Assembly: GCA_051294905.1 (NCBI GenBank)
Contig: CM119380.1
Coordinates: 20,584,001-20,648,000 of the forward strand
DNA: 64,000 nucleotides
From: Botryllus schlosseri
Taxonomy: Eukaryota
Direction of reading: 5' to 3'
Under the pieces are notes generated by a model. It searched no databases, had not been told where the DNA came from, and saw nothing but the letters and a program-made list of their open reading frames with translations. The position numbers and the translations under genes are program-made. Numbering within the stretch: the stretch's first letter is position 1; each line of letters starts with the position of its first letter. Shown here piece by piece: positions 40,201 to 62,671 of this stretch.

Positions 40201-43200
40201 ATAAGAGATATATTGCGATTTTGCAAGTGGCCGCCTCTGATGAATTGCAAAAAGTATGCGTCTCCTGTACCGAATCTACTTCTTGAACTACTATGTCGGG
40301 CAATTGTGAAACCTTTCGCTTTTTACTTCCACTTGAAGTAGTTTTAACGTGATTTTGAAATATCTGCTGGTAGTAGGAATTGAAATTTGCGACAATGTCT
40401 CTACTTCTCTCTGATTAGCACACTGACTGCCTTGACAACCTCTGAGCATCGATTATACTTTGTAGAAAATCGGGAAAGATTTGGACGAAGACAAGCCAAA
40501 TATCGATAAGCTGGCCGCGATCGCGAAAGAATTCGACGAAACCGCGAAGCAGTACGACGACACTGCAGATAAGTTCGAACCGGGTGATGCCACTCTTGCG
40601 TCTAAGAAGAAGGGAGGAAAAACAACCATCACACGCATTATCACTGTTGAGGTGCGGGGATTGTTGGTGTTACCCCGTTTTTGTGGCGTTACTTGCCGTT
40701 TTGAGCACCTCCTAGTTTTGCCAATTAAGCTATTGAAGAGATTATAACTTTACACTGACATCACTTTCGCAAAATGTATTTTAAGGCGAAATTATTTACT
40801 TTCATACGTGTTGGATTTTGGAAAGTGTGAAGTTTTTTTTTTTTAAAGGCTTGCATCACGTTTGCCACTGAAATAATCATGACAACCGAATGAACTAGCC
40901 CCCGTGTCATTGGAACTGAATATTTACTCAGAAAGTGCACTAATTTGCAATGTCTGCTTTGTGTTGGCCGCAATGGTTCATTGTTCAATTCGAATGTAGT
41001 CACCTCCGATTAACTACTTTTAAAGCACTTACTTTAGTACCTTGAGACCATTCACTTTGTATTTCTACTTGTAATTAAGTAGAAATTTACAGTATTACTC
41101 CCACTTCTACCTACTTAGTATCAATGCTGAATACTTTGTTTACCTCTGTTAGTAGTGTGGGATGCCCATTGTTCGACAGTGTGCAGAACGCACCAGCGCT
41201 TTGTACTGGTATTAATCAATTGTGTTTTACATATTTTTTTAATTGTCACGGCAGGTGACGACCATCACGCGCAAGTACGATAAGTTGAAGAACTTAATTT
41301 CCGAGAGAGTGGACCAGTACACCATCGAGTACGACAAGGCCAAAGATAGAGAGGTGACGATTTCTCGCATATCTACATACGTAGACTTAGCTCAAAAACT
41401 GATCTGCTGTAGTTTAGGCCACAGGTGTATTATAGTACTTCATATTGGTTGACATCGTGTCGCCTGTTAGCATTATCATTCTAAAATTCTCGATAGTTAA
41501 TGAACGTATTACCGTGTTAATTTGACATCATTAAGCTCGGTATATATGCCTGCAACGTAGACACCATGGTAGGCGTAGAATATAGCTAAAATTTCTTTAT
41601 TATATGAGTGCCTTCACAGCCATTTTTGATGCATTGCCTTGTTTAACGCGCATGCGCGTCACGCGAAAAGGTTTAGATTGGACAGGGGCGCCGTGTTGGA
41701 TTATACAGAAGCCGTTGATCGTGCAGTTCAATCTAATCGCATGTCCGATGCACACGCGAATTCGCTGTGGCGTACGTTTATATGTTGCGTTACTGTGTAT
41801 GTATGTATGCCGACGGTCCCCGTGAATAGTAACCAGCTACTGCGTGTTACTTGTCACAATGCACTCCGGCGGAAGTGCAATCAGGGTCATCCCGGACTCG
41901 AGTCCAAGTCGCACTTATAGTATGCATGGCTTTGCGTTGCTGTTTTCCTGTCGAGCTGTGCGTTGCTGTGCGGAGAATCATGCTGGGAGACGGGTGACGC
42001 AATTGGAATGCTGCGCGTAATTCCGGTGTATCTTCAATTCTCTCTTATTTGCACCCTTTACTAATACTGCTCGTTTTTATATCGCGCGCATAGTACGTCT
42101 GATAATAATTCGACTGGTGTATTGACGGGATGAGTAAAACCGGAGTTGGACACCAAGGAATTTTTAAGCGTTTTCAAATTAGAATAGAATTAGAATTATA
42201 GTAACACATTTTTTTTTAATTTGATTTAAATTCGCATTAATGAATTCACAGAAACTTGGAGATTAAATCGGATATCGAATTAGGGAGAAATACAACAAAA
42301 ATGATATCAAGTCATGAGTCCATTCTTGTAAGCACGAGAATTCGCAAATGTGTGTACAACAAGCTTGCCTCGTTTGACACGACACAGATCTCCTATGGCA
42401 TTTTCGGTAAAATGATAAATGAGACTCGAATCAAAATTTGATCATAGAAACATATCAAAATTAAATTATTGAAGTCTTAAAATTCGGAAATTGAATTGAA
42501 GAAATACAGCAAAATCAAGCTCAGTGCATATATAGTCAGAGTTCATACTCATATCCGAATGGCAAATGTCTGTGCAACAAGCTTGGCACGTTTCGCACAG
42601 CACATTTATCCTGTGACATTTTCGCTATTACCCGAATTTAGAATCGAATTGAAATTAGAGCTTGGAAACATTTCACAAATTAGATTAGAATTAGATTACC
42701 CGCATTTCGAATCAATTAGTCTGATTCGGCAACTAGGATGATCTATTTGTTCAAGTCTGATTAAAACGACATGTTTTGAGGAGTATCAATTCCGTTGGTA
42801 AGAAGTGTGAAATGACCGGGACGAATTATTATCAGAACCTTTCCACCGCGGTATACCCGCCGGGCGTGATGCTGCTGCTCGCTTTAATTGCTTGCCTTTG
42901 TATATCCACCTGCACGTTTTGATATACCTTGAGCTATGTGTCGAGTCGTGGGACACGAGGAGTATATGCGTTAGGATTTTGCGCGCGTGCCGGCTGCAGA
43001 TAGGTACTACCGCGTCCGTGGCTCTTGCGGTGTTATGTTTGGTATGGCGAGACGGTTGGAATGCGGCGTTTTCGAGGACTTTGGTGAGATTCATGCTTAT
43101 TGGTGAGTAACCGTTAACAGTTTTGTGTTTTTATCTTGCGTCTTCTGCTGCTGCCTGATCTTTTTCTGTCCGAACTCTTGTCGCGTGTGTCCTTGGCGTG

Positions 43201-46200
43201 TGGCTTTTGCGCGATTGCTTTTGGGCCTGTGTTGGTTAGGTTGGATTTGATAGCCGCGCTGACATCATGAGCAGTCTGGTTTGAATCGTATAACATAGTT
43301 AAGCCGCTAATGTAAACCAACACGGAATTCACTAGTGCGCAGATTGGAAAGGTCAATCATAATGGGAGAACATAATTTGATTTGCATTCTATAGTTCAAT
43401 ATTCGAAATTTTTCGTTTGGCATCATATACGTGATCGCAAAATTCTGCGTGAAGCGTCCGATTTGCCTTTAATTTGACGTATTGTTAGGGCTATTTCACG
43501 ATGAATAATGAATATCAACGAACCAACAATTACGTGTCGAATCGCTAGGTCCTGGTCATCGAGTGTAATTTGACTATTCTTGAATCAGTATGATAGATGA
43601 CAACTTAGTAGGTGTACTGTGTGTAGGGTATCTAATCGCTAAATCTATTTTCCTGCAATGCTCCGAGCGCTGTAGATTGTTACCTACATTTCAGCTGCAC
43701 TCTTATCTGTTATCGTCTCTTAATTTTTCATGGTACCTCAATTTTTCATTGTCTCCACTTTATGACACTGCGTAATTTATCGCGGTTCAAGACCATCACA
43801 CTATTTCGCAATCACATTTTAATGACTTGGTGCTCATTTGTAGCATTTGCGACAAAATGCGATCGTAGCAGATTGCCTAACAATCATTCATGCATTACAA
43901 CTATTCTTTCTACTAATACCACTGAGCTATCTATATATCTACGTAGTTCAGTGACTAATACCGGTACTTTGCTGTAATTTGTGGCGTAGACACTGATTTC
44001 TTGTAGACGGGTGTCAACCACGAGATGAATTTGGTGATACCGCTTTTGTGTCCGAGACTGATTTGAAATCGTTCTCGTAACGTACTGGTGATCTTCTACT
44101 CCGATTCATGACTTCACTGTGTCAATGCGCCTCATCCAATACTGCCGAGGCGGCCCGTTTTCCGGCAGAAATGGAGATCGAGAAAAGCGAAATTTATTCT
44201 AGCTTCGTAGATTTGCATTGGTGTAGAACTAACGCACGCCACGGTGGCCGTGATTTCCCCTCTCCTGAATATGTGGTGGCTTATCCGAACCAAGTCAACC
44301 CTCGTACAGAATCTATAGTCGTTGCGTTGGTTTCTGTTACCTATCGCGGTTCAGCGACAAAATCTGCCCTCGGCATCGCCAAACGAAGGCACACATCTCG
44401 TGGTCGATGGCCCTCGATTGATAGTCGGGTTCAATGCATGGTGATTGAACTTTCGTAAACTTCACGTCAGTGGATGCGCGCTTTCATATTAGAGTGTTTT
44501 CGTGAATCATGCATGCGCACAATTGAAGACTTTAGACCGGGATTAAAACAGATGTCGCACTTCTTAAGTTTCGAACCGTGACACAGGCTGACCGCGCCTT
44601 TTGCTGTGTCACTTGTTGTATAATAAGTTGTAACCTATCAGCGTGTGGAACATAACTGGTTTGTGATGATTTTCACACTTCGCTACAAGTCTAAGCCGTT
44701 CGGTAATTGCTATTTCAATGCCGCGCATCGCGTCAATAGAAGCCTCGCTGCGATGTCCTTTCTTCTGGTTTTAACTGTGAAGTTGGCGTAGATATGCTTA
44801 CGCAGCCGAGAGAAGTGTCATTTTCTCTTTTGCTGTCTTGAATGGCGGGCGCCGTAATATCGTGCGTAACCGCGTAATTGTCCGTGTAAATAATGTCAGG
44901 GTTATGATACTGCCGGGTGTTTGATATGGACGATTCGGACGGAGACGGGTCGGTTTTTAGCGCGTCTAGTCTGTGCTGCTGCTGCTGCCTTACCACCGAT
45001 TTAGTAGCCGGGTGGAAGCGAAGAAAATTGAGGAACAGGCGACTGAAATTGGTAAATTAACAGGCTAATAACAGGCTTCAATCGTAACCTTGACCAGATT
45101 AATTCAAGTGAAGGCGTGGATGGATGAGGCGCTATTGACTTTTTTCTCGATTTCTCTCGTTTGCGTGCGCTCATTGTTATTATTACGTCACTCACTGTGA
45201 CGTCACAACGGTTCCACAGGAAGCGGCGAGGCGCGCGGAGGAAGAGAAGAACGCGAAAACCACGACTATCACGGAGATTACCACCACCACGACTACTGTT
45301 AAAAAGAAATCCAGGCGGGACATCTATTTCCTGACTTCCTTCAGGAAGGAAGCTAGTCTGCTCGACTTGCAAGATGCGGGAATTGTTACCGAGGAAACTG
45401 CCCAGCAATTGGAATGTGACGCCATTCCTAAGGACGAGGTAAACATCACCGTTTCCCGCTGAATTTTATTTAACCACACGATTTAAGTTCAATTACGTCC
45501 GATTACCTTTGTTCTACCACGTTAATGCTGGTATTACCAAGAAATAGACAATCGTCTTTTATTAATGTACATTGGATGCAGGTATAGGTAGTAGGTAATT
45601 AGGTATACTGAGCAAAATACCTTTACTATGTTCTGTGTGGTCGCTAGTTTCATACACAATCGCCCATGTTAAAGTACTGCCATAGTTAATCTACACATCG
45701 AGATATCCTTATAAATGTCTGTTTGAGGTGCTTTTTAACCCATACGATAGGTAGATATTCTAATAATCAATATACTGATGTAATCATAGTGAATTTTAGT
45801 GACATTGCTCATGATATTTAGGTTGAACAAAGCCTGAAACGATATTTGTCAGGGGACCAACCAATATCTGGTGTTATCATACAAAAGGCGGACAACAAGG
45901 TCATGTCTGTCAACGAAGCGATGATCCGTGGTATTATCATGGCAGGAACAGGGTAAGTCTCGTGTTACCCTATCATTATCCTATTCTTGGGGTGCCGAAA
46001 TGTTGATGCAGGTGTTTTTGAGTTGACTCGCTCTATTGACTTCTGAGCATATGTGTATGATATTTTAAGAGACTCAGGTTGTATGTGGTATTTATTTTGA
46101 ATTGCGTTTGGAGATCATATTCAAGTACTTTAAAAATCAATTTTTATTGTGTTTAGAAATACGTTTGTGTGTTCAGGCTTGGTTTGCTGGAAGCGCAAGC

Positions 46201-49200
46201 GGCCTGTGGCAGCATGATTGATCCTTTGACCGGAGAACTGATGAGTGTCAACGATGCCATAGAGAAAGGACTGGTTGAAGAGAAATACGAGGACGGTTTG
46301 AGGCGTGCAGGAGCAGCCGTTTTCGGCTTTGAAGATCCTGTCACTCACAAAACGCTCTCCTTGTATGAGGCTATGAAAAAGAGTTACGTCGTCGAATCGC
46401 ATGGCATAAGGTAATTGTTGCGAATAATTTTCAGTTTTGAGTGTTTTCCTGTTACATGGGGTGTCATTAAGCTAAATGGGTATATGAACCAGGGTTGGAA
46501 TTTGGCCATATTTTCCTACGGTTAGTCGTGAAAAACGTATATTACGGTTTCACTGAAACTGAATTACCCATTACGTCCATATTGTTTGGCAAAAATGCAC
46601 AGATTATACACCGAAGACTCCAAACAACTTTGTTACTGTCAATTCACACACAGTTGTGACTTATTATTGTAATATATAACGTGTAAATGTACCAATATGC
46701 TCATTTTGTTTTTAATTATATACTATGGGTATATACTACCTTTGTTGTGGAAATACCCATGGTTAATGAAACATTACATTTATAGAATTACAGTTCCGTT
46801 TATGGTGACCCTGATATGGACTAAAATTACTGGAAATATTTGATTTAGAATTGATTACTGGTATCAATTATGCATTTTTCTGTAGTAACGTCCTTCGTTG
46901 CAATGTTGGTTATAAATCTCATGAACTAGTGGTTATCAACGATATTGATTAGAACCAGCACATTCACTGAACCAGTTAGGCTTTACTCGATAAAAAGGAA
47001 TATTGAAGATCAGGTTAGGCCCTATTGACCATTTAGCCTACTACTTTGGAAGTTACAGCAGTGAGATTGACCCTTTGATTTGTTATAAATACTGGTGTAG
47101 TATTTTCTACGTGTCCAAGTGTGAATCTAAATTGTTTCTATTATGAGTTTACAACTATTTTCCAGATTACTCGAAGCCCAGATTGCCACCGGAGGCCTGA
47201 TCGACCCGAGGGCTAACCACCGTGTACCAATTTCTGTCGCTTACCGTAGAGGCTTGTTCGACGAAAGGATGAACGAAATATTAGAAGACCCATCTGACGA
47301 CACTAAGGGGTTTTTCGATCCAGACACCAAGGTAATGGTTTTTTTGTTTTGTTATAGGTGTGGTTTGTGAAGGTATAAAATATCTTGATGCAGTTCGTAC
47401 CGCGTGTACACCCACTTGGTAAACAAAACACGGTATTGTGCGTTTTTTGAGTAAATTGTGAAAAAAAATTTGAACCTGTATTTGCTTTTATTATTTGTTT
47501 TTTTACCGCCACCCATGTGCGTTTGGCGTTCCAAGCATTCCAATGCTTGCACAGTAAATACTCTGAGGTCAGCAGTCTGTTGAATTATAGACTTCTAATT
47601 ACGTGACAGATGGTTGACCTATTTCGGAATTCATTTTTTACGATTTCTAGCCACATTGTTTCAATTGCACAATATTCAACTGAGACCATGGAATATTCTG
47701 ATTTCCTTATTTTCCGGAATTAGTCTATGGCCGGGTGGCTACCGCATTCCGCCATCACATGGCATAGCTCATTCATAATCCAGTCCTGCCTGATTGGTAG
47801 ATGTGGGCAATGACAGTTAGGAGCTGCATAAGCTTTTTTGGCTTGGATGATGTGCATTCCCATATGGTGCTATGATGGTATGTCATCAATGATTCCGATT
47901 TGGTTATCCTTGCCATAATGTAGTTGTTCGAATATTCGAGAGGCAAAGGGTATGCTGTAGTTTTGTTTGATGCCTCAACCTCGTAAACATTTCAGATAGA
48001 GTTTTTACGGTTATAAATGTTTAATCCCCTATTGAAGCTATGTGTACGGAATGACCATGAACGTTGACCAGTTATGTATCTGACCAATCCTATTTTTTCA
48101 GAAAAACAACACCTACCTCGAACTGATGTCGAAAAGTACAGTTGACCCTGCTACAGGCGTCAGGCTCTTGCCCTTCACAAGAGACGTGGACTTGGCAAGA
48201 GTGAATATGGATCTTGCTGAATTGATAGCCTCGAAACGTAGCCGGAAGAATATCAAGTTAGTAAACCTATCCCTGATGTAAAAACTCACTGTCGTTGCTG
48301 TATTCTGTGATGTATCCTGTATCAATTGGTTATCGATTACTCCAATTAACCTAACTCGCATAATGATGATAATGATTGTAGCAATCGCATAATGCTGTCT
48401 GTGCAATTCTGAAAGACATATGAATCTTTGCCTCACAAAGAGTGCACAAAAACTCATTTGTCACTGAACATTACTACAGTAAAACAAGAAGTACAGATTC
48501 AATCTCTGATAATAATTAATAATGCAGAACATTAATAAAATACAACCCTTGTAATAACAGAACGACGCATAGAAAAAATACTGTGGTAGCATTGAGCTAA
48601 AGATATCCCTAGAATTTACGTTGACTGTGGTTGAATTTGATCTGGGATTTTCTGAGTTCTATTGCACAGATCAGAAAGTAAATGTACATAATTTGTCACA
48701 AGCCTGCTTCCGAAATCCAACGGCGTCAATTGTTTGTTAGTTATTGGAATTAGGATGAATCCAGAAATTGAATCCCGAACAAAAAAATGGCCGAAGTCCA
48801 AGTCGCAAAACTGCTCCTCAACAAGCATTGCCTTTACAGATTCAAGACCGGATTCCGACGTGATGCTAGCTTGCTCGATATATTTGACGCTGGTCTGATC
48901 ACCGAGGAACAAGTGGTTGGTCTCGAGGAAGGCGCCATCCAGGAGGAAGACTTAGCGTCTCAACTGAGACAATATCTTTTCGGAGGCGAAGAGCCCATCG
49001 CCGGAGTCATCCTGCAAGCAACTGGTACCTTGATAGATGCCCTCTTTTGGATGATATTCAATTAATCTGAACCGAATCTCAGGTGAGAAGCTGTCCATCA
49101 ACGACGCTGTGCAGCGTGGCATTTTGAAACGGGGCACCGGAATTGAGCTTCTGGAAGCGCAGGCAGCCACGGGAAACGTGATCGACCCCAAGACGGCGTC

Positions 49201-52200
49201 GAAAATGTCCGTGGACGAAGCTGCCAAGATAGGTATGAGACACGGCTAGATCATGAAGTAATCTCTACACCTAATTCTACTGTTACAAAGTACTAAACTG
49301 GGTTTAAATATTTAAGTGGGTTTAGTTCAACCACTTACACACACACAAGTGATTACGTTTCTACGTTACTTCCATTTTACAACCACTGACTTTTTTAGCT
49401 TCAATTTTCGTCAAGTAGAAAGTAATAGGTTCACATATTCTATTCATTGCCATTAGTCATTGTGGGTTAGTCGCACAGATGCGTCTTTCTATTTCTGAAA
49501 CTGTCACCGGCGATTGACTGCTAAAGTCATGCAACGTGTCATCCTAATTTAGTCCTTGAGTACCTGTTGCTTTCTACGTCTATTTGAAGTAGTTTTATCA
49601 TGCCATGAAAGCCACTTCAATACTTGTAATCGAGTAGAAATTTATAGCATTGCCTCTACTGCTATTGAGTGCCAACAATGGCTACTTGCCCGATAGTTAG
49701 GAGTTTCAATCTTCAATTTTTCAAGATCCCGATTGAAATTAAACTGTGTAATTTCACTTTAGGTCTCATCGACCAGCTTCACGTCGACACACTACAACGT
49801 GCAGAACGAGCAGTGTACGGTTACAAATTGCCGGGCACCAATAAAGTCCTATCGTTGTTTGAAGCGATGAGCAAGGGACTGGTCGTGGAATCGCGGGGTA
49901 TTCGTCTGTTGGAATCACAAATTGCGACGGGCGGTCTCATCGATCCGAGAGCAGCGCATCGAGTATGTGGTTGCGCTTGAATTTCGAGTTTCCTATTCTG
50001 TATTTTTCCCTTTTTGACCGCGTGCAGGTGCCAATATCGGTTGCTTACAAGAGAGGTCTGTTTGACGAGAGAATGAATGAAATCTTGGAAGACCCGTCTG
50101 ACGACACAAAAGGATTTTTCGATCCCAACACGCAAGAGAATTTGAGCTATTTGGAGCTTATGGAACGGTATGATGCTTCTCATCACTAGTAATGCTGATA
50201 TGAGTCGATGTTATCTTGTACAGTAGGCTACATGCACAAAGACTGTTGTTATGTGTAATGGTGTCGGATTATATTTCTCTACCACAAATAGGCCACCGAT
50301 GGACTTTTTTTCCAAAACTTTTCCAAAACTACTTTCTACTTCACGTGATTGACAATGTGAAAGGTTATCTGTTGTGCCTACAGATTGTCGAGTAGAAGTA
50401 AAGGTGCAACTACTTGAGTAAGGACTACAAGTAGATAAAATCTACCCGAGTAATTTGCTACTGACCACCTTTTATTTTATGTGTGGTATATGTTGCAGTG
50501 AAAAGTAATGTGTAAATTTGTACAGGTTTTCATTATCTGGCGATTGATTGTTGAGTTTAAATTAAAATATGAGGAACCCCCGGCGTGTCACAGAGTGTGA
50601 AATTTCGTAATAATCATCACGAAAACCGGCTGGTCTTGTTTGTTCTGTGCTTTGCAAAGTGGTTTTTGTTGACTATGTTCGTTTTCATTTTCTGCCCAGC
50701 TGCTATTTCTCAAATTTCGCTCATTTCCTGAGTTAGATTGTGGGAGTCGGAGCGCCGGTCTTTCCCGCCAAATCTAATTGTTCGATAAAAATTTAATTAT
50801 AAATTATGTATGCGACCGCATCATTTTGCACCTCGAAATCTAATACACGTGACGTTTGAGAGCAATCTGTGAATCCCATTTCAGGTGCGTTACGGACGAG
50901 ACAACCAAACTGCGATTCCTCGTCCTGCAAGAAAAGAAGCCTAAGAAGCGTTCGTCAAAGTCAAAGGAACGCGAAAAGAGAAAAGAAACGCCTAAGAAGA
51001 CGTCGAAGGATGACACGGTGAGTTTATATGCTGGTGTTTCAAGAACACCATTCTCATCCTTTCTTGTTATCAAGACCGATTCGCCTTCGAGGACGAGCAA
51101 GAAGACAAAAACAATTGAGAAAATTACAGTCACTCACGAGACGGCTGTCAAAAGCAAGAATCCAGACGAGATATCGTAAGTGGGAATCAGCATAAAACAT
51201 CATCCAGATTCAAAGTTCTGATTTAAAAATGCCAGATTTTGATCGGCAGATCGCCTTTCTTGGCACATATATGTTGTATCGGTATCGATATCCAAATATC
51301 TGGGTTTTTCTCAATCTTAACACTATAAATTGCTGCCTAAAGAGTGCATGTGAACACTGAGCCACCAGGATTTCTTCTCTCATAATGCAAATCAACGTAC
51401 TAGATCGATTGATAGTAGGGAGTAGTCATTCTAACAGTCCCAAGTACTCTTTAACTGCTACCTTTTGTATTCAAATTAGATTTGGGTATCATCTTTCTCT
51501 TGGTAAGACCTTGGCAGCTTTCACACCTTATTTAACGTCCACTTGCAAATGATTAAAACTTTATTTGTTACAACCTTATACTGGTATCTTTTGTACGGCT
51601 GTGCTGCTGATCAATTTTAGTACACTAACCGAAGATTTGGAATGACGTACGCTTGTAATACAGAGAAGAACAAACCTATTCCTAGTTTCTGTGAAAGAAT
51701 AGAAAACTTGCGTTTGGCCAGTTTGTTCACTTATTTTGGTATGTATCTTATAATTTAATCTCTTTGCTAGCTGTGTGATAAGAAAATGTTATCTGTATCT
51801 TTTTCTTTGATTAAATATCGATCTGATTTCAAGTACAAAGTTTCATCTTTCGCGTAGATTCAAGACCGGATACAGACGATGGGCCAAGCTCAAGGACTTG
51901 GTGAAAACGGGTGTCGTGAGCGAAGAGACGGCCGCCCAACTGAAGAGCGGAGCCATTCTGGAGTCAGAAGTACGCAAGCAAATTCGCAGGAATCTGGAGG
52001 GTGACGAGCCCATTGGAGGCGTGTTGGTCGCCAACACGGGCGAAAAACTGAGCATCAACGAAGCCACCAAGCGCGAGCTGCTCATGAGAGGCACGGCTCT
52101 TCAGTTCCTGGAAGCGCAGGTAACTTGGAATAGTTCACAGAATAGTTTTGAGATATGTTTGTAACACTTTTACGAGTGAATTAACCCTGTATCCATGTAA

Positions 52201-55200
52201 CTGAATGAATATATTGTCAAAAACTGTAGCTATTGGTAGTGCCGTTTATCATTTTGGTTATGTCACGAAGATGCACCTTGAAATCTGATAGTCCTCGCGT
52301 AAGAACATCGTCTAAAAGTAAAAAATAAAGTTTTTAATATGCAAGTGGATGTTAAATAAGGTATGGAATTTTCCTAGATAATAATTTTAGTTACAAATTT
52401 GTCCCCTCTTGACCAATCTACTTTTTTAAAGAATGTACTTGAACACTTTTTTAAACTTCATTTTCCACTTCCACAACTGAAGTTGTTTTGCTAATCGCTA
52501 CTTTTACTGTTAAGTAGAAATTTTAGGCATTGCTACTACTTATTAATTACCAACACTGGCTACTTCACCACCTCTAAACACTTGAGCTTGCGAAACTCGA
52601 GCATGTGGATTAAAGAGATGGTTAAGTTTAGGTTAGAGTTAGGTTTGGGATTAGGATGCTGTTAGGGGGATTAATACTTGGGTTATGATTAGGGGATGAT
52701 TTTAGGTTAAGTGTCAGGTTTGATTTTGTTGCCATCGTTAGCTTTGTGGTCGAAAGTCACCCGCTCAAGTGTTTCCTGCTCATCTGTTATTCTTCATTGT
52801 GTCGCATGCTCAAATGTTGGGCGATCGTTATAACGTTTCGTTTTTGCAGGCCGCAACCGGTAATATCATCGATCCCAAATCCGGAGAGAAGATGAGCGTC
52901 ATGGACGCCTATTCGTCTGGTTTGATCGAGAGAAGCCATATTGAGCCGCTGGAGCGCGCAGAGCGAGCTGTGCTTGGGTAAGGAAGCTTGGCTATCATTT
53001 CAAGCCTTATCTGAATCACCATCAGTTTATTAGTAATATTTCCTCATCGACTGCTTCCCGAAATTGTTGTAATGTGGTAACGCTCTAATCAATCCAATGG
53101 TTTTCAACCTTGTCATGTTCCTGGACCAATTCCTGTATTGCAAGTGTTCCATGGCCCATCTCTTGTTCCAGCTTGAATCATTGATGGAAGTTTACCTTTA
53201 ACATATAATAGTGAAGATCTAACATACTTCGTAGATTGCCAGGAAACTGGAATGAGGAACTGAAGGAATCTTTTCATATCGATACAATTAGTTCTTATTT
53301 TTGGTTCCCTCTGGTAGGGTAAATATAACAGTGATAGTGGAACGATTCTGGGAACTGTCTGTGCAATTGACTACATGCGAGTTTAAAGAGTACTGCAATA
53401 TGGTTTCCGCCCTCGTCATATTATATTGTGTCATAGCGACAGAATTCCGTCCATATTTCGAATTCACCTCATCGCATTCATTGAAGTTCACAACTAAAAT
53501 GCTGAAATCTGGAAGTATAACTGATTTAGCAATATGAATAGTTGCCTGAGGAAATTGTTAGACAAACAAAACTAAACTTTTCATAAAAAATTTCATCATT
53601 TTGCAAATAGCTCTGTGGCCACTGAAAACCACTGTTCTAATCAATGTATTGATGTTGCATTTACAAAACATTATTCTTGTTCTCCAGATATGAAGAAAAA
53701 ACAACGAAAAACATCCTGTCCTTGTTCGAGTGCATGCGCAAAGGTCTGGTCACTGAGACGCGCGGCGTCAGGCTTCTCGAAGCACAAATCGCAACCGGAG
53801 GTCTCATCGACCCCAGGGTCAACCACCGGGTGCCGATAGCAGCCGCGTACAAGCAAGGCATCTTCGACGAGAGAATGAACGAGATTTTGGAAGACCCCTC
53901 TGATGATACCAAAGGCTTTTTCGACCCTAACACGAAAAAGAACTGCTCCTACTTGGAGCTGGTTGGACAATGCATCACGGACCCAAATTCCGGAATTAAG
54001 CTGTTGAAGGTCACCAGTAAAGATGTAGGCGAGACAGTTTCGTCAGGGAGAAGACGCAGCCGATATGACATCCAGTTTGCCACCGGATTTCTAAAGTAAG
54101 TCGGTCTTGACGGGAGCCTATTCTGAAGCTGTGTCAGTGTACCAGCCAAGTGGGTCGTGTGTGCTTCCTTATATAACTCATGAAGTGTTCCCGGTGTCCA
54201 GCGTAAATCATTGCTCCCCATGAACACTTTGAAAATTTCTGGCGCTTCACATGATCGTCAATTGTGTGCTCTACAAATAACAGGGGAGATCAAAAGTGTA
54301 CTGTCTGGCCCTGGCATATATGGGGAGTATAAATTCCCCTACAATACCCCACCCAGCCCTCCTCCTACCCTAGTCCAGATATTGTTGAGTTGGTCTCCGG
54401 CTTGCAAATATCAATTTTTGTAGGGAACACAGTTGATGATAATGCAAAGCAGCAATGATTCTAACTGATCATGGAAAACACTTATTGTGATGGTTAGGGC
54501 GAAAAATTGGTAGGGCTTAGCCAAGGCACGGGAAGATACTAGCCTGGCAGGCGACTATACCTGATTTTGACATGTTTCAATGTGATTGGTGACGTCTGGG
54601 TTTGAAATTTCAACAGTCTTGCTCTTCCAAATTGTAAAATGCGCTAATTCTTTGCTGTTAGAAAGTCACTTGTGTTCCACTTGAGAGGGTCTCACGCACC
54701 ACAGTTTGAAACTCGCTAGCATCAACAGTAACTGTCTAATTTGCACATTGCTGCATAGCGAATGCGGGCTGTCATTCGATTTATGTGGGATTTTACTGGG
54801 ACTGTACCAAATAAACAATCTGACGATTTGTAATATTGCATCCCACTTTTACTCAGACGGGCGTCGCTCATGGACTTGCTCGAAGCCGGTATCCTTACCG
54901 AGGAGACCGTGAGGGCCCTCGAAAACGGAGTGCTTTCCGAAGACGAGGTGGCCAACTCTATACATCAGTATTTGCACGGCGAGCAGCCAATCGCCGGGCT
55001 TATTTTGGAAGCCACTGGCGAGAAAATCAGCATTCTGGAAGGAATACAAAAAGGAATCATCAAACGCGGAACTGGTAGGTCTTTAGGGTGATTATATTCT
55101 GCATTGGAAAAATTAGAAGTATTTACTTACTGACGGACCACCTTTAGTTTTCTCCGCACTACCGCAGCCTACTATTAAACATTTCCTATTGTTGAATCAG

Positions 55201-58200
55201 GTCTTGAATTGTTGGAGGCTCAAGCGGCTACTGGTACTATCATCGATCCTAGGACCGGCGATCGTATGTCAGTCAGCGACGCTTACAGCAAAGGCTTGGT
55301 AGACAGCACGCAGAAAGACGCACTCGAACGTGCCCAACGTGCAGTCACCGGGTATCGAGACCCGGTCAATGGAAATACATTGTCATTGTTCCAAGTAAGT
55401 TTGATGATCTTCTCGAAGTAGATTAACATATTTTCATTTCATTACTTTTCTGTTGTAGGCGATGAAGAAAGGCTACGTCACGGAATCCCGCGGTATTCGA
55501 CTCTTGGAAGCGCAGATTGCTACTGGCGGACTTATCGATCCGAATGCTGCTCACCGAGTGTCCATCTCGGTCGCTTACAGGAGAGGCATCTTTGACGAAA
55601 AGTTGTATCAAATTCTTGAAGATCCGACCGATGATACAAAGGTCTGTGTGTTCTTTTGGACCCCTAAATTGTATAGCATCGTCTGTAGCTTGTGCATAAT
55701 CAAATCCTATGTTCGATATGCAAGGCAATGCAAAATTACAATAGTTGTGCGCGCTACCAAATAATTGCCATAGGAACCCGTTATATGTGTTCGTGAGGCC
55801 ACTGCATAGAAGTGGATACAAGACTTCGCTTGCATCCTCATTCAAATCCTCTTTTCTTCTTTAGGGATTCTTCGACCCGAACACGCAAGCGAACCTGACC
55901 TACCTCGAACTGATGTCCCGGTGCGAAATCGAGCCGGACAGCGGCATGGTGCTGCTGCTGCTGAAAGACGCCAGGTCCAAGAAGTCCAAGCGTAGCAGCT
56001 CGAGCAAAAAGAAACACCGCACGACGCGCAGAACCAGAAAAGTCATCATCGTCGATCCCGACACTGGCAAGGAGCTCTCAGTACGAGAAGCTCATAAGAA
56101 AGGTATGCAGCAGTTTTTTAACTTTCGCTGGTTAACTTGGACCATCATGTTTTTCGACTATTTCCACTTCTTCTTGATAGTTTCTTTTTAGACTTTGAGC
56201 TTTAGAGAGTAAAAAGTAGCTTTGAGCTATGTCCACATCACCTTTTTAAGTGAAGTTGTGTACCGACTGGGCAGAATAGCATGTATCTGATGAAATTATC
56301 TCTGAAATCTAATCTGGATGCTGGGTTTAGGTCTCATAGACAGCGCCACTGCGAAACAGCTGATGGCACAAGAAGGCGAGTGGCAAGAGACGGAGGAGGC
56401 TGTCGGCCCCTCGAAGCCCTCGTCCAAGACCGTGACAACGCAAGAGATATTTGTTGATGCGCAAGGCAGCAACATGTCAATCGACGCCGCCGTCGATAAG
56501 AGTCTTGTGGACAAGGGCACTGCGGAGAAGTTCAAGACGGTATGATTTGCTCTGGATGCTTACACGATCATTCCTGTAATTTTTGAATTGTATATAACAT
56601 GCTAATTTATGAGGTAGGATGGGCAAAATTAAAATACCTGAATGAGTTGATTCCGTTATGCTCCCATAAAAGAAGAGTATAAATATGTTCATAAGATATT
56701 GTATACCTTGTGCTACACGTTTTGAAATGTATGACTGTATGAAATAAGGTTTAGAAAATGTCGCCTTTCACTATTCGATTCATTATACCTAGCCTTATAA
56801 ATGAGTATATAACATGGCAGATACTATTAATGAATAGGCAGTGAAAACGAATTTCGAAAGTGACAATGTAGCAATGAATGATAGATTCATATTGCCAATT
56901 TCATGCCACTTGAAGCTTTCCGACTGACTCTCATCGGGAACATCCTCTAAATGAGGTTGACCAAATTCGAAATATAGAAAGACTTCTGTCGATGTGCTGT
57001 TATAGTGATGACTACACATAGTCGCGAACTGCAATAACAAACATACAAACTGCAATAACATAACGCTAAGACTGATCCAGTAAAATAGAAACAACTTTTA
57101 CTCCATTGACCTGTCTCATCCTCCTCGGTATCGGCTCACTTCCTTGACTTTATACTCCATTTGTCTCTATATTCCTGGCAAGGTTGCATGATTTTGTAGG
57201 GATAAACGCATATCCAAAGCTGTTTATCTCTGGATTAGCCACTGGTGTGAATAAAATCAATATAGATGGTGAAGCGACTTCATTTAACCCCATTTTGGTG
57301 TGTGTGATTATATTATTTCTCTATCTCTGCAGGGCGAAATATCTGCTGAAGAACTCACAGCCCGCTTGTCCCTTCTGTCATTCGGCAGCCAGGGCCCGAT
57401 CGGGGGCATCTTGGATTTGAAGAAGGGCGAATGCATTACCATCCCCGAAGCTGAAAAAAGACGAATAGTGGACAGCACGACTGCGCAAAGGTTGCTTGAA
57501 GCTCAGGTAAAATACGAAAGCTGTAATATAATCGCTAAATGAGAATCTGATTATTATCTGATTATAACTTATTTAGGCGGCCACTGGTGGCGTGATCAAT
57601 CCTTTGGATACGGAACGATTGAGCGTTGCTGACGCAGTGTCAAAGGGCGTGATTGACCGACGTATGGGTCAAAAGTTGGAGAAAGCCGAAATGGCTTTCA
57701 AAGGCTATGAAGATCGGCGTTCGAAACAGCTTGTGTCTCTAGGCGAGGCTATAAAGAAAGGGCTGTGCTATTACGACGCTGGGATGAAGTTATTGGAATA
57801 CCAATACGTGACAGGTGACATTTTCAATTCGATTATCAAGCTGTAAAAATAGGTCTGGAATGCGATCTGCAAATAAATGGGTATGAAGCGGTGCTTTGAA
57901 CCGGTCAAAACTTGACACTATGCTTTTAATAGCATTAAAGGGACACTGCACTCTAAAAATGATGTGGTCTCCAATTAAAGGGTAATAGGAAGAAAAAAGA
58001 ATGGCCGCAGCCGTTTGCTTCAGAACGCCACCGTAATAGAGCTGCAATGTATTGAAATTTCCACAAACACATGCTCCAGAAGTCACGCAGAGATCGAACT
58101 TTATATAGTTGTCAGCCGATGTTATGAAGGAAATATGTCGTACACGACAGAAATAGAATACACTAGGCCCGATTTTGACATAATCTCCTGTCTGAACGTG

Positions 58201-60090
58201 AACATCTTCCTTTGAACGCGGTATCTAAACCACCTTGGCGTGTACGACATATTTCCTCCATGACATCGGCTGACAACTATATAAAGTTTCGATCTCTGCG
58301 TGACTGCTGGAGCGTGATGTGTTGGTGGAAATTTCAATACATTGCAGCTCCATTACGGTAGCATTCTGAAGCAAACAGCTACTTCCAATATTTTTTTTTT
58401 CATTTTACCCTTCAATTTCAGACCACATCACTTTTAGAGTGCAGTGCCCCTTTAAAGTATCATTTTTGTGTAGCTTATGATGAAAGTATGGCCACTATGC
58501 TCATTTCTTAACCTGCAAACTCAGTGAATTTCTGAATAACAGAAGCATGTTTTACGAGGGTATTGATTTTTCTCAATTTTGAGGTGATTAGTACTCATAA
58601 ATGACATTCAATACCAGTTCAAGTATTGATATGAAACTCTGCTTCAGTACCAGCAAGGATTGTGATTTTCAAAGCAGAAGTAGACTGATAGCCTTGTCTC
58701 AAAGGTGATGATGTTTTTTAGTAACTCTGCGGCTGTTTCATTAGACTGACATTACACCGTAATTGTGATATCAAGTCAAGTTTAACCCCAAACATAAGCA
58801 TAGCTAGGATGATAAATTTGGGTGGGCAGATGAAAATTTGGGCAAATATCATTAGTCCACATGGAAATTCTCCTCAGCGAGTGCAAACTTTGCATATTGC
58901 AACCAGCAATCAAGAATTTCTCACATTATTGCTGCATATTTGCAGGGGGCATTGTCGATTACCGCACCGGTTCGCGTATCACCATCGACGAGGCCTTGGA
59001 GCGGCAATGGATCGACCGTAGGCAAGCCGATAAACTCGCTGATTTGAGACGATACGCTCGTTCCATAGTCGATCTGCGGACCAACATGTTGGTAAGTGCA
59101 ACAATTCGATTCCTTTTTTAAATTAATTTGAAGCCTGCGAAATTTTCAATGTTATTTTTCTTGATTTTCAGTTGACTTATCCGGAAGCACTCGAGAAATC
59201 CACTCTCGACTCCAAGACCGGTTTGAAGGTTATGGAAGCTTTGCCGAGAGCCGAGAGGAGTGCGCGGGTAGCAGGCGGCTTGACCATACACGCCGGCTCC
59301 TTGCATTCCTCCTTGTCGAGCTCGCTTGCCAGTTCGAGGGGTAAGAGGAACCTTATGTAACCCGTAAGGATACAAGCGTGTCCATACAGTTCCCTCCCAG
59401 TTTGTCCTTTTGTGCTGTTGGAAAGAAATCTGTTTTCAGCAATTAACTTTGCTTAAAATCCTACCACCGGTATACAGTCTGCAGTCTTATAAGCCGTAAT
59501 TCTGTTGATTTGGGGATATGTAATCTGCATTTGTGATGCGTTGGATTGCTAGTCATTTTATGCACCTCACACCTTCATCCTATACCCTCTCCAGAATCTG
59601 GAATAATTACTTGTTTATATATAATATATCTAAATATAAGATTGCATTATAAGACTGCGATATTTTTTTGTGATAGAGGAGCCTCTTGAAGGTATATAAC
59701 GTCAATTTACAATTGAATAATGTATTCATGTTAAAATAACGTAAATAATGGAAAATGTGAAAAATCCTCCATGTTTATATAGACAATTTTGTATTTTATG
59801 GTAAATAACGGTCATCGAGCTTCGATAACCGTGGCAGTGAGTCAGCTTCTGCTAATGTGCCGGATTAGTATTCATTTATTTTTATTGTATTTATTTGGAT
59901 CGGAAAATATACTCTTTCGTTTATACACCTCATGCATTATTACTCCAGTCTCCGTAGTAGTCGGCCGTATTTTTGTATAGAAATGGAACAAGTGTCTTCC
60001 CTTGTTGCAGCTGAAAGCCCGATTGGCACCCCAAAAAGACGAGGTAGCTTCGACGACGACACTGGGTCTCTCACATCACCGAGAAGATAA
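12203..60090 (+). CDS. PLEC: Plectin-like plakin, 68-exon isoform starting at the S10 exon (~4081 aa); co-orthologue of plectin/dystonin/MACF1
   Basis: All exons traced by eye with GT-AG boundaries and matching phases; summed CDS is 12,246 nt and divisible by 3. Domain order: S10, CH1-CH2, plakin domain/SH3, spectrin repeats, 5 plakin-repeat domains, RRGSFD tail. Symbol denotes closest architecture, not proven 1:1 orthology. Confidence 0.9.
14436..18174 (+). CDS. PLEC: Actin-binding domain (CH1+CH2) exons: 14436-14497, 14648-14737, 16598-16675, 17189-17281, 17363-17523, 17679-17794, 18068-18174
   Basis: [16 protein letters not shown]; [20 protein letters not shown]; [22 protein letters not shown]; [19 protein letters not shown]; [13 protein letters not shown]; [23 protein letters not shown]. 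All have canonical splice sites. Confidence 0.97.
15971..16100 (-). repeat. Degenerate copy of the Penelope/hammerhead tail
   Basis: cttcttggagg..ggggtaatcgtcagcaactag; core mutated to CTGGCGA. Confidence 0.75.
19101..26783 (+). CDS. PLEC: Plakin-domain N-terminal spectrin repeats and SH3 exons: 19101-19456, 19991-20084, 20609-20757, 21183-21354, 21427-21555, 22326-22409, 22472-22633, 23190-23390, 23997-24125, 25081-25230, 25698-25979, 26603-26783
   Basis: Helical spectrin-repeat sequence; SH3 signature [11 protein letters not shown]|[26 protein letters not shown]; phases are consistent. Confidence 0.9.
21577..21960 (-). repeat. Two tandem copies of the Penelope/hammerhead tail (21577-~21720; 21791-~21960)
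   Basis: tcgtcaggggtaatcgtcagcaact motif occurs twice; the first copy stops at about the predicted cleavage site and the second has a mutated core (CTGACCA..GAAG). Confidence 0.75.
24377..24388 (+). CDS. Candidate 12-nt microexon (REIT) in a phase-0 intron of the plakin domain
   Basis: ctgac branch-like motif, pyrimidine tract, catcag|AGAGAAATCACG|gtaagt; frame-preserving. Confidence 0.45.
25267..25407. repeat. ~71-bp direct tandem duplication
   Basis: gatt(t/c)gtacaattgcggtattt(a/g)gttgtattaaggttaagcaagcgttttcatattttgtgtcgaatt occurs twice. Confidence 0.85.
26030..26578. repeat. AGTA/AGTAG-rich dispersed repeat family (probable non-autonomous DNA transposon); other copies near 20120, 35730, 36470, 40260, 41010, 49270, 50330, 52380
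   Basis: Recurrent agtagaagta / tactcaagta / gtggtca motifs in both orientations; boundaries approximate. Confidence 0.55.
26821..26872. repeat. Minisatellite (ttattgcgttgtg)~4
   Basis: Direct reading of the short intron. Confidence 0.75.
26882..30893 (+). CDS. SR7-SR8 cassette copy 1: 26882-27036, 28538-28719, 28834-28972, 30132-30343, 30853-30893
   Basis: [15 protein letters not shown] resembles plectin GAQEESRCQRCISEL; exon sizes 155/182/139/212+41. Confidence 0.88.
27505..28480. mobile_element. hAT-like MITE with subterminal GACTT/GACTC pentamer arrays
   Basis: TIRs cagtgttggga / tcccaacactg; perfect 8-bp TSD CTCTATGC at 27497-27504 and 28481-28488; related end near 63415. Confidence 0.88.
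30952..33323 (+). CDS. SR7-SR8 cassette copy 2: 30952-31106, 31167-31351, 31413-31551, 33086-33323
   Basis: Exon sizes 155/185/139/238 with the same phases; [15 protein letters not shown]|ITGL motif. Confidence 0.88.
31742..31785 (-). ncRNA. Minimal hammerhead motif, mirror copy in the left arm of the palindrome
   Basis: Exact reverse complement of 32288-32331. Confidence 0.7.
32288..32331 (+). ncRNA. Minimal type-I hammerhead ribozyme motif (sense to host gene)
   Basis: ACCC-CTGACGA-G[TGTCAGC]C-GAAA-ATAT-TC-GGGT: stem I ACCC/GGGT, palindromic loop III, predicted cut after 32327; upstream GCTGAC is complementary to loop II GTCAGC. Confidence 0.7.
33978..35698 (+). CDS. SR7-SR8 cassette copy 3: 33978-34132, 34200-34381, 34435-34576, 35464-35698
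   Basis: Exon sizes 155/182/142/235; [15 protein letters not shown]|IKVL motif. Confidence 0.88.
34826..35026 (-). pseudogene. hAT transposase C-terminal dimerisation-domain remnant
   Basis: [37 protein letters not shown] fits the hATC P.T...VER.FS motif. Confidence 0.65.
36215..38219 (+). CDS. SR7-SR8 cassette copy 4: 36215-36369, 37027-37211, 37281-37422, 38006-38219
   Basis: Exon sizes 155/185/142/214; [15 protein letters not shown]|VKRV motif. Confidence 0.88.
38286..39738 (+). CDS. SR7-SR8 cassette copy 5: 38286-38440, 39099-39280, 39345-39483, 39545-39738
   Basis: Exon sizes 155/182/139/194; [15 protein letters not shown]|LDAL motif. Confidence 0.88.
39798..41353 (+). CDS. PLEC: End of plakin domain (SR9): 39798-39963, 40466-40651, 41255-41353; last exon ends in phase 0 (YDKAKDRE)
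   Basis: [19 protein letters not shown] and [26 protein letters not shown] correspond to the pre-rod exons of plectin/dystonin. Confidence 0.85.
44926..45051 (+). CDS. Candidate internal alternative first exon: [42 protein letters not shown]
   Basis: gatATGG, first ATG after the in-frame TGA at 44905; 42 codons ending TTG|gtaaat in phase 0, compatible with the acceptor at 45220. Confidence 0.5.
45220..48256 (+). CDS. PLEC: Plakin-repeat domain 1: 45220-45438, 45822-45952, 46177-46410, 47166-47331, 48102-48256
   Basis: [18 protein letters not shown]; [22 protein letters not shown]; [21 protein letters not shown]. Confidence 0.93.
46490..46813. mobile_element. Possible small hAT-like insertion
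   Basis: cagggt..accctg ends; flanks atatgaac / atatggac (7 of 8 match). Confidence 0.4.
48840..51175 (+). CDS. PLEC: Plakin-repeat domain 2 and basic spacer: 48840-49024, 49083-49232, 49763-49962, 50028-50167, 50885-51017, 51075-51175
   Basis: [16 protein letters not shown]; [14 protein letters not shown]; [24 protein letters not shown]. Confidence 0.93.
51858..54095 (+). CDS. PLEC: Plakin-repeat domain 3: 51858-52119, 52850-52977, 53688-54095
   Basis: [17 protein letters not shown]; [21 protein letters not shown]; [16 protein letters not shown]. Confidence 0.93.
54857..56539 (+). CDS. PLEC: Plakin-repeat domain 4 plus IF-binding linker: 54857-55074, 55201-55394, 55459-55641, 55865-56102, 56331-56539
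   Basis: Linker [30 protein letters not shown] resembles plectin KRRVVIVDPETGKEMSVYEAYRKGLID. Confidence 0.93.
57333..60090 (+). CDS. PLEC: C-type plakin-repeat domain and tail: 57333-57506, 57577-57814, 58946-59091, 59172-59340, 60011-60090 (stop)
   Basis: GPIGGILD; [14 protein letters not shown]; [14 protein letters not shown]; terminal [26 protein letters not shown] carries the plectin/desmoplakin RRGSFD motif. Confidence 0.9.
57939..58451. mobile_element. TTAA-flanked foldback MITE (Kolobok/ANGEL-like) with ~210-bp imperfect arms
   Basis: ttaa|agggacactgcactctaaaa ... ttttagagtgcagtgcccct|ttaa with long internal complementarity. Confidence 0.8.
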
Positions 60091-61607
60091 AATCTGAATT
60101 TGCTCTGACGCCGATAAAGATTCGTCGTCTTATGTACATATGTGATTGTATGCGCCACTTTTGTTACATGAGAATGGTGCAACTGTGTTTTGCGACTGCC
60201 TTTTTACCACGACTGTTGCACAATCACTTTTTTCCTTGTTTTAAACAATTTTGAACGTTGTTGTCGAAGGAGAAAGTTCCAACCCTGTAGAGTAGAGTAA
60301 GACGATACTAACACAATGTACAATAATTTAGCTGGTTTTTTGGGGGCTGTGTACAGGGGAAATGTGTCAAAGATTGTAAATGGCTGTCCACAAAGTGCCT
60401 TAAGTATTTGCTATTGATTAGCGCACATATTCTAAAACTAATGCCTTCTACAACTCATATCTGTAGCTGTGTACCTTGGAGTTTAAGTAGTACATATATG
60501 TATACACGGTACATTTTCATTTTACGTGAAAATCACGGTCAGTGGGGTGTAGAATCTTGTCAATACGTATACAATATTCGGTGTGCAGAATTACCTGTAT
60601 AATGAAAATTTTGACGACTAATTTCCTAAAATATCCACCTGTATATAAATTGTAACTAGTTAAAATCAATGCAATTGAGAGCCATATCCGAGATGCATTA
60701 TTGCGTCTACTCTCACTTATAGTGAAATGTACACTGGTGATAGATCGTTTTACACAATACCATGAGTACCTTTGAAATATAATCATTATAGGTACTGTAA
60801 AGTTACACAAACTTGATAATATAGATGTGCGAAATATGGTACAAAAATTCGCTAATCGACTAGTTGCAAGAATCATTTGTTAATAGGTGTGATTCAGTAT
60901 TAATCTCAAGCGATAGTAGCGTACTTAATGTGTGTAGTCTGTGAGTAAATACACTGTAGAAGCAACAGTATTTGTATCAAATCAATCCAGTAGTGACCAT
61001 CAAACGATATCATTAATTTGAATTAAAAAAATAACTATGTCAAATGATTGACTGTATTATTTTAATTTTGAAACGAAATCGGGATTGTGATATCCTTGAA
61101 TTTCAGCCTGATGAAATTATAATCCAGCCTTATTTGTGTATTGCAATTGTAGATACCATCCGTCAATAGCTTGGTGGTTGTCCAAGCTACCTTCTCTATC
61201 ATCTGCACTTTTTAATTCTGTATAATTCATACATGGGTTTGGTACTGTATGTACTAAACTTGAAATGTGGAAAACTTGTACAAAGTACTAATCAATTTTC
61301 ATAATGGAATCCAGTGCCTTTGGAACAACAATGGTTTTTGAACAGGGTAATTGAGCTTCCTGATTAATCCAAGTTGTTGAATTTTAGAGCTAACAAGATA
61401 AGCTCACAATTGTAGACAAATTTTTGAATCAAATTCTGATTCTTTTTAGATTATGGTGTTTAAATTGCTGTAGCCTACATTGAAAGAAATGAATTTTCTC
61501 TTTCTGGTTATTATTTTGCTGTAATTTTGTTTCGTTTAGTTGACTGTCAACGCTCTCTTAGTATATGGTGAATGTGAAATACAATTTTCTCTATATGTTG
61601 GTTTTGA

Positions 61608-61668
61608 AATAAAAACGAAAGTGGCCTTATTTTTTTTCCAGCTGCGATAGTTCTTGTAATGGAATAAA
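61608..61668 (+). promoter_or_regulatory. Candidate poly(A) signals of the plectin-type 3'UTR (AATAAA at 61608 and 61663; ATTAAA at 61022)
   Basis: Hexamers lie downstream of the 60090 stop and ~200 nt upstream of the 61860 acceptor; usage unverified. Confidence 0.3.
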
Positions 61669-61859
61669 TGAAAATCGTATACATGTCGAGTGAACGGGTA
61701 GGTTTTGGTGTTGTGGTGACGTACTTTGTGTTTTGGGTGATGCTGTCTGTGTTATCGGGTCCAGCGTTTAGTCTGTCGTGAAAAGGCAATGCATCAAGGC
61801 TGTGAAGGCAAATGTTGTTTTTCAATTTTGATTGTGAATGTATTTTCATGATTGCTTAG

Positions 61860-62092
61860 GACAAATATGCGGCCCTCCAAGGGCAGCTGGATGCTGACAC
61901 AGAAGCATTGTGTCTCCACGAAGAAGCGCTGGAAGCTGTTGCCGGGCCCGATGATTTTCTGAATGACATCCCAACTCTGAAGAAATTGGTCGATGAGCAA
62001 AGGTCGCTCGTAAGTGACATTGCAGAATCGACTCCCCGCATCGAAAAGACGTGCAACGATGTAGATCAGTTTCTGGATGCTACTAACGACAG
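61860..62092 (+). CDS. Spectrin-repeat exon downstream of the plectin stop codon (spectraplakin-type branch; continues beyond window)
   Basis: ttag|GAC...AG|gtaagg, phase 0 to 2; DKYAALQGQLDADTEALCLHEEALEAVAGPDDFLNDIPTLKKLVDEQRSLVSDIAESTPRIEKTCNDVDQFLDATNDR shows a spectrin-like heptad pattern. Confidence 0.75.
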
Positions 62093-62671
62093 GTAAGGAG
62101 CGTGGAGCACTGGTGTTGGGGGGACTTATCCTTTGAAAAGTAGTAGCGAAAACTTGTGCCATGCGTCTCCATGACAATGAAGTAATATAGGCGCATACGT
62201 ATTGAGACTAAATATATCAATCAGCATAGATTCAAGTCATATATAAAGCAGGCATGTCAAACATATGGCCCGGATCAGTATTGACTATGTGCAAACCACA
62301 AGTCGCTACCGAATGTCTATCTAAGCTCTAAATGAAAATACACCAAATCCCTAATATTTCATGACTCTGTATAGAGCAGCAATTGATACAGATGCTCCCA
62401 TGCTAATTACTAACAGGTCAGCGATAATCTTACCTCTTCAATGCAATCATCATTAATGGCAAGCTTTTCATGTCACACCAGCACTGGGATTTCCAAAATC
62501 ATAACGAGACTCATAAAGGAGAAATATGCTATGACGTGCAATGATAATGCAAGATTGGGGGAAAATGTGGAATAGTCTGTGCTCACAAATTGAATAATCT
62601 GGTTTCACATTAAGAGACATCGTATATAGTTGATATTCGAAAGAGCCTATATTTTTCATTTCTATGCATAA

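Follow-up and report, generated by a model that had tools for sequence, protein, structure and literature searches.

A plakin/spectraplakin locus with a shared plakin-domain donor and two proposed alternative 3' branches

Introduction

Can one gene supply both a plectin-like protein that ends in plakin repeats and a spectraplakin? The question is raised by a stretch of 64,000 nucleotides of Botryllus schlosseri DNA (assembly GCA_051294905.1, contig CM119380.1, positions 20,584,001 to 20,648,000), hereafter the window, numbered from its first letter. An initial annotation, made from the letters alone, had proposed that a plectin and a spectraplakin are both encoded here through alternative 3' branches that leave the last exon of a plakin domain. 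The proposal is examined below against the sequence, domain and structure matches, and RNA contigs. All features described lie on the forward strand.

Comparable loci have been described in other animals. In vab-10 of C. elegans, 15 common exons are followed in VAB-10A by two exons with plectin repeats and in VAB-10B by downstream exons coding for spectrin, EF and GAR domains, and no isoform with both blocks was found (Bosher et al. 2003, PMC2199363). The plakin repeats of mouse BPAG1 are either terminal (BPAG1e) or central (BPAG1b) (PMC2173965), and in Drosophila short stop (Shot) a giant exon of plakin repeats lies inside the protein (Roper and Brown 2003, PMC2173965). According to a recent survey, the vertebrate plakins derive from a spectraplakin ancestor (PMC9145010). 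The design has been known from vab-10 and dystonin since 2003, and the present locus adds a further case of this architecture.

Results

The last exon shared by the two proposed branches (41255-41353) consists of 33 codons (99 nt) with phase 0 at both ends and is bordered by cag/GTGACG...AGAGAG/gtgacg, as identified in the sequence and in RNA contigs. Two acceptors further downstream are likewise in phase 0: one at 45220, where the first plakin-repeat exon begins, and one at 61860, which lies beyond the stop codon of the plakin-repeat branch (TAA, 60088-60090). The phase of the donor at 41353, the phases of both acceptors and the position of the stop at 60090 before exon 61860 had all been given in the initial annotation, and all are confirmed in the sequence. 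The reading preferred here, to which a probability of roughly three in four may be assigned, is that of one plakin/spectraplakin locus which, by joining the donor at 41353 to one or the other of these acceptors, makes two or more classes of protein. The donor is accordingly proposed to feed both 3' branches; its junction to 61860 is observed, and its junction to 45220 is supported indirectly.

The RNA evidence is drawn from Logan contigs of four runs aligned on positions 56200-62199; run X1 belongs to a study of 2015 and run X4 to a study of 2022. X1 record 6 (514 nt) and X4 record 19 (1396 nt), which thus come from different studies, both align at 61858-62093, and both bear in front of this alignment 26 unmatched letters, CGAGTACGACAAGGCCAAAGATAGAG. 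Within the window this sequence has a single occurrence, at 41326-41351, where chance would predict 0. It is followed by AG, with which both the shared exon and the intron end, and the contigs read ...AAAGATAGAGAG followed directly by GACAAATATG.... Since a unique 26-mer from the shared exon precedes exon 61860 in these contigs, the junction 41353>61860 is established as a canonical GT-AG junction that keeps the frame. RNA evidence for exactly this junction had been named as a check on the initial proposal, and it is provided by the contigs of X1 and X4.

The exon reached by this junction, the first of the spectraplakin branch (61860-62092), contains 77 codons plus 2 nt (DKYAALQGQL...DATND). 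It is preceded by ttag and bordered by tag/GACAAA...GACAG/gtaagg, with a phase-0 acceptor. Because it has no Met and the in-frame triplet directly before it is TAG, it is unable to be a first coding exon. Positions 61860-62093 are fully contained in contigs of several runs of RNA type. Past 62092 both junction contigs go on with GCTCGGTCCTAAAAAATCTC..., X4 record 19 for at least 1134 nt. The 30-mer at this downstream loose end has no occurrence in the window, so that the next exon, starting with GCTCGGTCCTAAAAAATCTCAAGCGTTGGGA, lies beyond it.

The plakin-repeat branch has an end of its own. Five junctions, which link the last six exons of this tail in agreement with the gene model, are found in the RNA contigs (56539>57333, 57506>57577, 57814>58946, 59091>59172 and 59340>60011), all of them GT..AG and each in three or four runs, and X4 record 17 (1831 nt) traverses all five. 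Contigs spliced from 59340 continue past the stop at 60090 into a 3' untranslated region (UTR; 60091-61720), which is identified by RNA coverage and by AATAAA signals at 61608 and 61663. Coverage extends to 61625 in X3 and to 61719 in X1, and depth drops beyond 61600. The 3' end of the tail would therefore lie at about 61.63-61.72 kb, some 150-230 nt 5' of the acceptor at 61860, with a UTR of ~1.6 kb. With its own stop, 3' UTR and poly(A) signals, the plakin-repeat block is a self-contained terminal block. Depth over introns within the aligned stretch is zero in X1 and X3.

In the gene model the tail consists of 23 GT-AG exons with consistent phases, which form one open reading frame (ORF) of 1505 amino acids following the shared exon. 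Its first exon (45220-45438) is in phase 0 at both ends, according to the sequence and the ORF model; it is preceded by ccacag, and its borders read cag/GAAGCG...GACGAG/gtaaac. As the in-frame stretch 5' of its acceptor contains no ATG, this exon requires an upstream exon. Sixteen predicted exons follow, at 45822-45952, 46177-46410, 47166-47331, 48102-48256, 48840-49024, 49083-49232, 49763-49962, 50028-50167, 50885-51175, 51858-52119, 52850-52977, 53688-54095, 54857-55074, 55201-55394, 55459-55641 and 55865-56102. According to the model they code for four B-type plakin repeat domains (PRDs) and the start of a linker. Their borders are predictions of the ORF model, with the donor at 56102 alone backed by RNA, through a loose end at 56329. 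The rest of the linker and a C-type PRD are encoded by five RNA-supported exons (56331-56539, 57333-57506, 57577-57814, 58946-59091 and 59172-59340), and the coding part of the terminal exon (60011-60090), identified in the sequence, the ORF model and RNA contigs, ends with the stop codon. The predicted order within the 1505 residues is four B-type PRDs, a basic stretch and the linker, one C-type PRD, and a Ser-rich tail with the motif RRGSFD, which is located in the last tail exon.

The domain assignments rest on several searches. Plectin repeats were found in 8 of the 9 tail exons tested against Pfam, with E values from 1e-10 to 1e-19. Among structures in PDB, exon 53688-54095 matches PRD-B of desmoplakin (5dzz) with an E value of 2.4e-82 and ~68% identity over 108 residues; other PRD matches are to envoplakin, plectin (2n03) and PRD-C of desmoplakin, and these structure matches do not tell plectin and desmoplakin apart. 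The linker aligns with that of periplakin (4q28, E 2.9e-5). In protein databases, a PRD exon retrieved close fragments as well as vertebrate epiplakin and plectin at ~50-58% identity. By its PRDs, linker and RRGSFD motif the tail may be classed as a putative intermediate-filament-binding plakin tail of the plectin, desmoplakin and BPAG1e type. In the model the plakin domain and the PRDs are not separated by a coiled-coil rod, no rod exon stands between 41353 and 45220, and exon 45220 reaches the first plakin repeat within ~40 residues. This exon itself found no candidate in protein databases, and no fragment spanning either branch junction is present among the protein-database matches obtained with exon 45220, exon 61860 and the PRD exon. 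Four relative loci (L001-L004) include parts of the tail; the shared exon lies outside them, and no homologue of exon 61860 can be recognised in them.

Upstream of the branch point, the exons carry matches resembling those of plakin domains. An ORF of 340 amino acids (12197-13216) contains an S10_plectin domain (Pfam, E 5.7e-34); it starts with a complete eS10-like sequence, which aligns to residues 1-152 of ribosomal eS10 and is followed by ~180 further residues, and it sits 5' of the CH-domain exons. Pieces of CH domains were found, exon by exon, at 14.6, 17.3 and 17.6 kb, with Pfam scores of 22.2, 31.3 and 24.1 bits, near or under the cut-off of 26. The best PDB matches of these exons are the actin-binding domains (ABDs) of plectin and MACF1, between which the PDB match does not separate. 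A Spectrin match of a single exon at 19.1 kb scores 27.2 bits, slightly under the Pfam cut-off of 29.9, and a plakin-type SH3_10 at 25.7 kb scores 32.2 bits, above its cut-off of 22.8. The plakin domain structure of plectin (2odv) is the best PDB match for the plakin-domain exons (E 8.9e-10). A plakin domain, that is, spectrin repeats with an embedded SH3, is thus present in the upstream exons.

Several further observations concern the branch point and the tail region. A short Thr/Ile-rich motif is repeated around the branch point, at 40650-40700, 41255-41275 and 45260-45300, where the last plakin-domain exons end and where the tail begins. The tail 3' UTR, between 60301 and 61595, shows many differences between runs and reference, including insertions of 16 and 17 nt in run X16, and this variability points to high polymorphism in the species. 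Contigs of RNA type pile up over 57800-58600, in the intron between exons 57577-57814 and 58946-59091, with a summed depth of up to ~1100 in X3; loose ends and non-canonical joints are numerous among them, and many can be placed at two positions. The pile-up resembles a transcribed repeat or mobile element rather than a part of the gene. A GC content of ~41%, together with the high polymorphism, would suit several marine invertebrates.

Discussion

The two branches may be pictured as the outcome of a competition in which the distal acceptor stands against the proximal one and the poly(A) site belonging to it. In the first branch, splicing of 41353 to 45220 would commit the transcript to the terminal block of 23 exons, with the stop at 60090 and polyadenylation near 61.7 kb, and the product would be a rodless cytolinker binding intermediate filaments, like plectin, BPAG1e or VAB-10A. 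In the second branch, where 45220 is left unused, transcription proceeds beyond the poly(A) site and 41353 is joined to 61860, the block of 20.5 kb being removed as an intron; the transcript would then go on into the remaining spectraplakin.

Two groups of observations weigh against this reading, and they concern its two branches in turn. The first group relates to the junction 41353>45220, which was not seen directly, the RNA alignment covering 56200-62199. A candidate internal first exon (44926-45051; 42 codons with an ATG), identified in the sequence and in 'RNA?' runs, lies 5' of the first plakin-repeat exon; it has a phase-0 donor with a good splice site (/gtaaat) and codes for a Cys cluster and a polybasic stretch. 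Four runs (X1, X3, X8 and X22) contain it at a share of 1.00, among them X1 and X3, whose introns are at zero depth in the aligned stretch. A homologous Cys-rich, polybasic start (MSHYDG..CCLGCCLTPD..KRRAKARR) is encoded in a relative locus (L003:2516-2629, E 1.4e-4), ~450 nt 5' of the first PRD exon of that locus and therefore in the same relative position. This conservation suggests a membrane-anchored, tail-only isoform. Some or all of the tail transcripts could accordingly start at 44926-45051.

Taken to its full extent, this leads to the alternative that survives best, although it is still an unlikely one: that all tail transcripts start at 44926-45051 and yield an epiplakin-like protein of the tail alone, probably palmitoylated, while the CH and plakin-domain exons are always spliced to 61860 and no plectin-like protein combining ABD, plakin domain and PRDs exists. 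The internal exon, its presence in four runs, its counterpart in a relative and the unseen junction all favour it. However, the piece of the shared exon that opens both junction contigs measures exactly 28 letters. In a graph with k=31 this length implies a second path that shares 'GA' after the donor at 41353; exon 45220 begins with GAA and exon 61860 with GAC, whereas 29 shared letters would be expected if the unspliced intron (GTG) were the only competing path. The argument assumes that Logan contigs break at branch nodes of k=31, and the break is found in two runs. In addition, X4 expresses the tail, at a depth of ~32, yet is not listed among the runs that hold the internal exon; in general, the depth of contigs reflects expression poorly, and the runs are marked 'RNA?' in kind. 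The acceptor at 45220 is also compatible in phase with the donor at 41353, and a form combining ABD, plakin domain and PRDs is conserved, as judged from VAB-10A and plectin (PMC2199363). Phase, the break at 28 letters and X4 thus lend indirect support to the junction 41353>45220. Under the reading of two acceptors for one donor, a tail-only isoform that starts at the candidate first exon 44926-45051 is likely to form a third class of product.

The second group of observations concerns what exon 61860 encodes. The window holds only one exon of 77 codons from the spectraplakin branch, and a spectrin rod, EF-hands and a GAS2 domain are not seen in it. Exon 61860 has no match in Pfam and no significant family match; the leads are a weak one to spectrin in the atlas and alpha-spectrin in PDB at E=1.1. 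Its fold is predicted to be a hairpin of two long helices and a loop, which fits part of a spectrin-type bundle without proving it. The label of spectrin repeat, attached to this exon in the initial annotation, is compatible with the predicted hairpin but is not established by Pfam, the atlas or PDB. In protein databases the exon retrieved P0001 only. A HMMER search of the whole library with the 78-amino-acid exon gave two exon-sized genomic fragments from one sample, with 78% and 49% identity; two bacterial repeat proteins that also appeared among the matches were rejected as unrelated. The 49% copy lies on an 11.8-kb contig of a relative (sample SRR25569784), where an ORF of 642 amino acids with faint Plectin matches is located ~3 kb further downstream. 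Such an ORF after the homologue of exon 61860 would fit a continuation of the kind known from Shot or BPAG1b. The same contig contains four ORFs of 80-81 residues on one strand (3825-4067, 6558-6800, 9441-9683 and 9817-10062), interleaved with ORFs that match Plectin repeats. The rod, EF-hands and GAS2 domain of the second branch would be expected downstream of the window.

A very improbable alternative is that the tail is an internal cassette, as in Shot, MACF1b and BPAG1b, and that its exons run into 61860 with the stop at 60090 skipped. Exons with phase-0 ends at 45438, 47331, 49962, 52119, 55394, 55641, 56539, 57506 and 59091 could in principle be joined to 61860, and a contig of X16, a run of uncertain kind ('?'), is contiguous over 60346-62029. 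This contig crosses the acceptor at 61860 without splicing, however, and must therefore represent genomic DNA or unspliced RNA. No joint between tail exons of the stretch 56200-60090 and 61860 was found across the four runs; the contigs on 61860 have exon 41255-41353 upstream, the tail contigs pass through the stop into the UTR, and the donor at 59340 leaves 1 nt, so that the frame would shift. The last alternative, a separate downstream gene in which exon 61860 has its own promoter and the plectin-like gene ends at 60090, draws on the position of this exon after a stop, UTR and poly(A) signals and on its lack of a family match, but it retains almost no probability, given that the exon has no Met and an in-frame TAG before it and that an identical, canonical, in-frame RNA junction to 41255-41353 in two studies makes chimeras in both unlikely. 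The case that had been named in advance as refuting the initial proposal, 61860 as part of a separate gene or under a promoter of its own, is removed by this junction.

The proposal that the donor at 41353 is spliced to either of two acceptors is supported in part. Its core, alternative 3' branches from one donor, has the backing of RNA, while a 'plectin' isoform proper and a spectraplakin C-terminus are inferred. The earlier claim that plectin and spectraplakin come from one locus fares in the same way: the junction 41353>61860 stands in the RNA of two studies and the tail has its own end, and for the plectin arm, through 41353>45220, the support is indirect.

The plectin character of the tail had been argued from a list of supposedly plectin-specific hallmarks, namely an S10 exon, 1a/1f-like exons, a linker of the RRVVIVDP type and the RRGSFD tail. 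This part of the annotation is overstated. The linker matches periplakin, the best PRD match is PRD-B of desmoplakin, and a coiled-coil rod is absent. RRGSFD is common to desmoplakin and plectin. Being common to periplakin or desmoplakin, the linker and the RRGSFD tail are not plectin-specific. To our knowledge, S10 is the sole domain of that list which is specific to plectin among the vertebrate plakins.

Of the known systems, vab-10 offers what appears to be the same plan: a common 5' region with ABD and plakin domain is spliced either into a plectin-repeat block that terminates by itself or past this block into spectraplakin exons; the chromosomal order of common, plakin-repeat and spectraplakin exons is identical; and no isoform with both blocks was seen here either. 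The tail at the present locus differs in being divided into 23 small exons rather than two, in lying far nearer to vertebrate PRDs (the ~68% identity to desmoplakin PRD-B), and in possessing a clear linker, a C-type PRD and RRGSFD. Unlike vab-10, it has no short coiled-coil rod ahead of the repeats, and a giant degenerate plakin-repeat exon may come after exon 61860, which for now is a lead only.

DST/BPAG1 is likewise a single locus whose plakin repeats stand at the C-terminus (BPAG1e, which lacks spectrin rod and GAS2) or in mid-protein before the rod (BPAG1b) (PMC2173965). If a giant plakin-repeat exon does follow the terminal PRD block here, that combination would be the closest likeness to DST. 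The present tail differs from that of BPAG1e in having five PRDs instead of two, in being rodless and in being probably joined to exons 3' of the CH domains. BPAG1e itself lacks the ABD and possesses a coiled-coil rod.

With PLEC the locus would share its succession of domains, from two putative CH domains and a plakin domain with SH3 through several B-type PRDs and the linker to a C-type PRD and a tail that contains RRGSFD; an exon coding for S10_plectin (12197-13216), a candidate first exon, lies upstream. Plectin, however, is a separate gene with no spectraplakin continuation, and it has a long coiled-coil rod and five B-type PRDs and one C-type PRD in one giant exon, whereas four B-type PRDs and one C-type PRD are spread here over many exons, with no rod. 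A rodless isoform of plectin is known in vertebrates. Shot, finally, is comparable as an invertebrate spectraplakin encoded at one locus, whose plakin repeats stand between plakin domain and spectrin rod; these repeats are degenerate and always internal, in contrast to the canonical 4.5-repeat domains in a terminal block found here.

It is plausible that the locus represents an unduplicated ancestor of PLEC, DST and MACF1, as had been suggested from the sequence. A more specific version can be put forward only tentatively: if the organism is taken as a non-vertebrate deuterostome, one gene may preserve the state before duplication and supply a plectin-like isoform with the S10-type first exon of plectin, a BPAG1e-like terminal tail, a palmitoylated tail-only epiplakin-like isoform and the MACF1/DST-type spectraplakin, and PLEC, DST, MACF1 and perhaps EPPK1 may have arisen by splitting these among duplicates.

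The current picture is left unchanged, as a single spectraplakin locus with alternative ends was already expected from reviews and from the work on vab-10. What the locus contributes is an RNA-supported case, apparently from neither a nematode nor a vertebrate, of a shared head with an alternative IF-binding or spectraplakin tail, and a tail that is much nearer to the vertebrate plakin repeat domains than that of VAB-10A. It bears on when a first exon of S10 type, the linker and the phosphosite RRGSFD came into being, and it is a useful anchor for the origin of plectin, dystonin, MACF1 and the smaller plakins from one gene.

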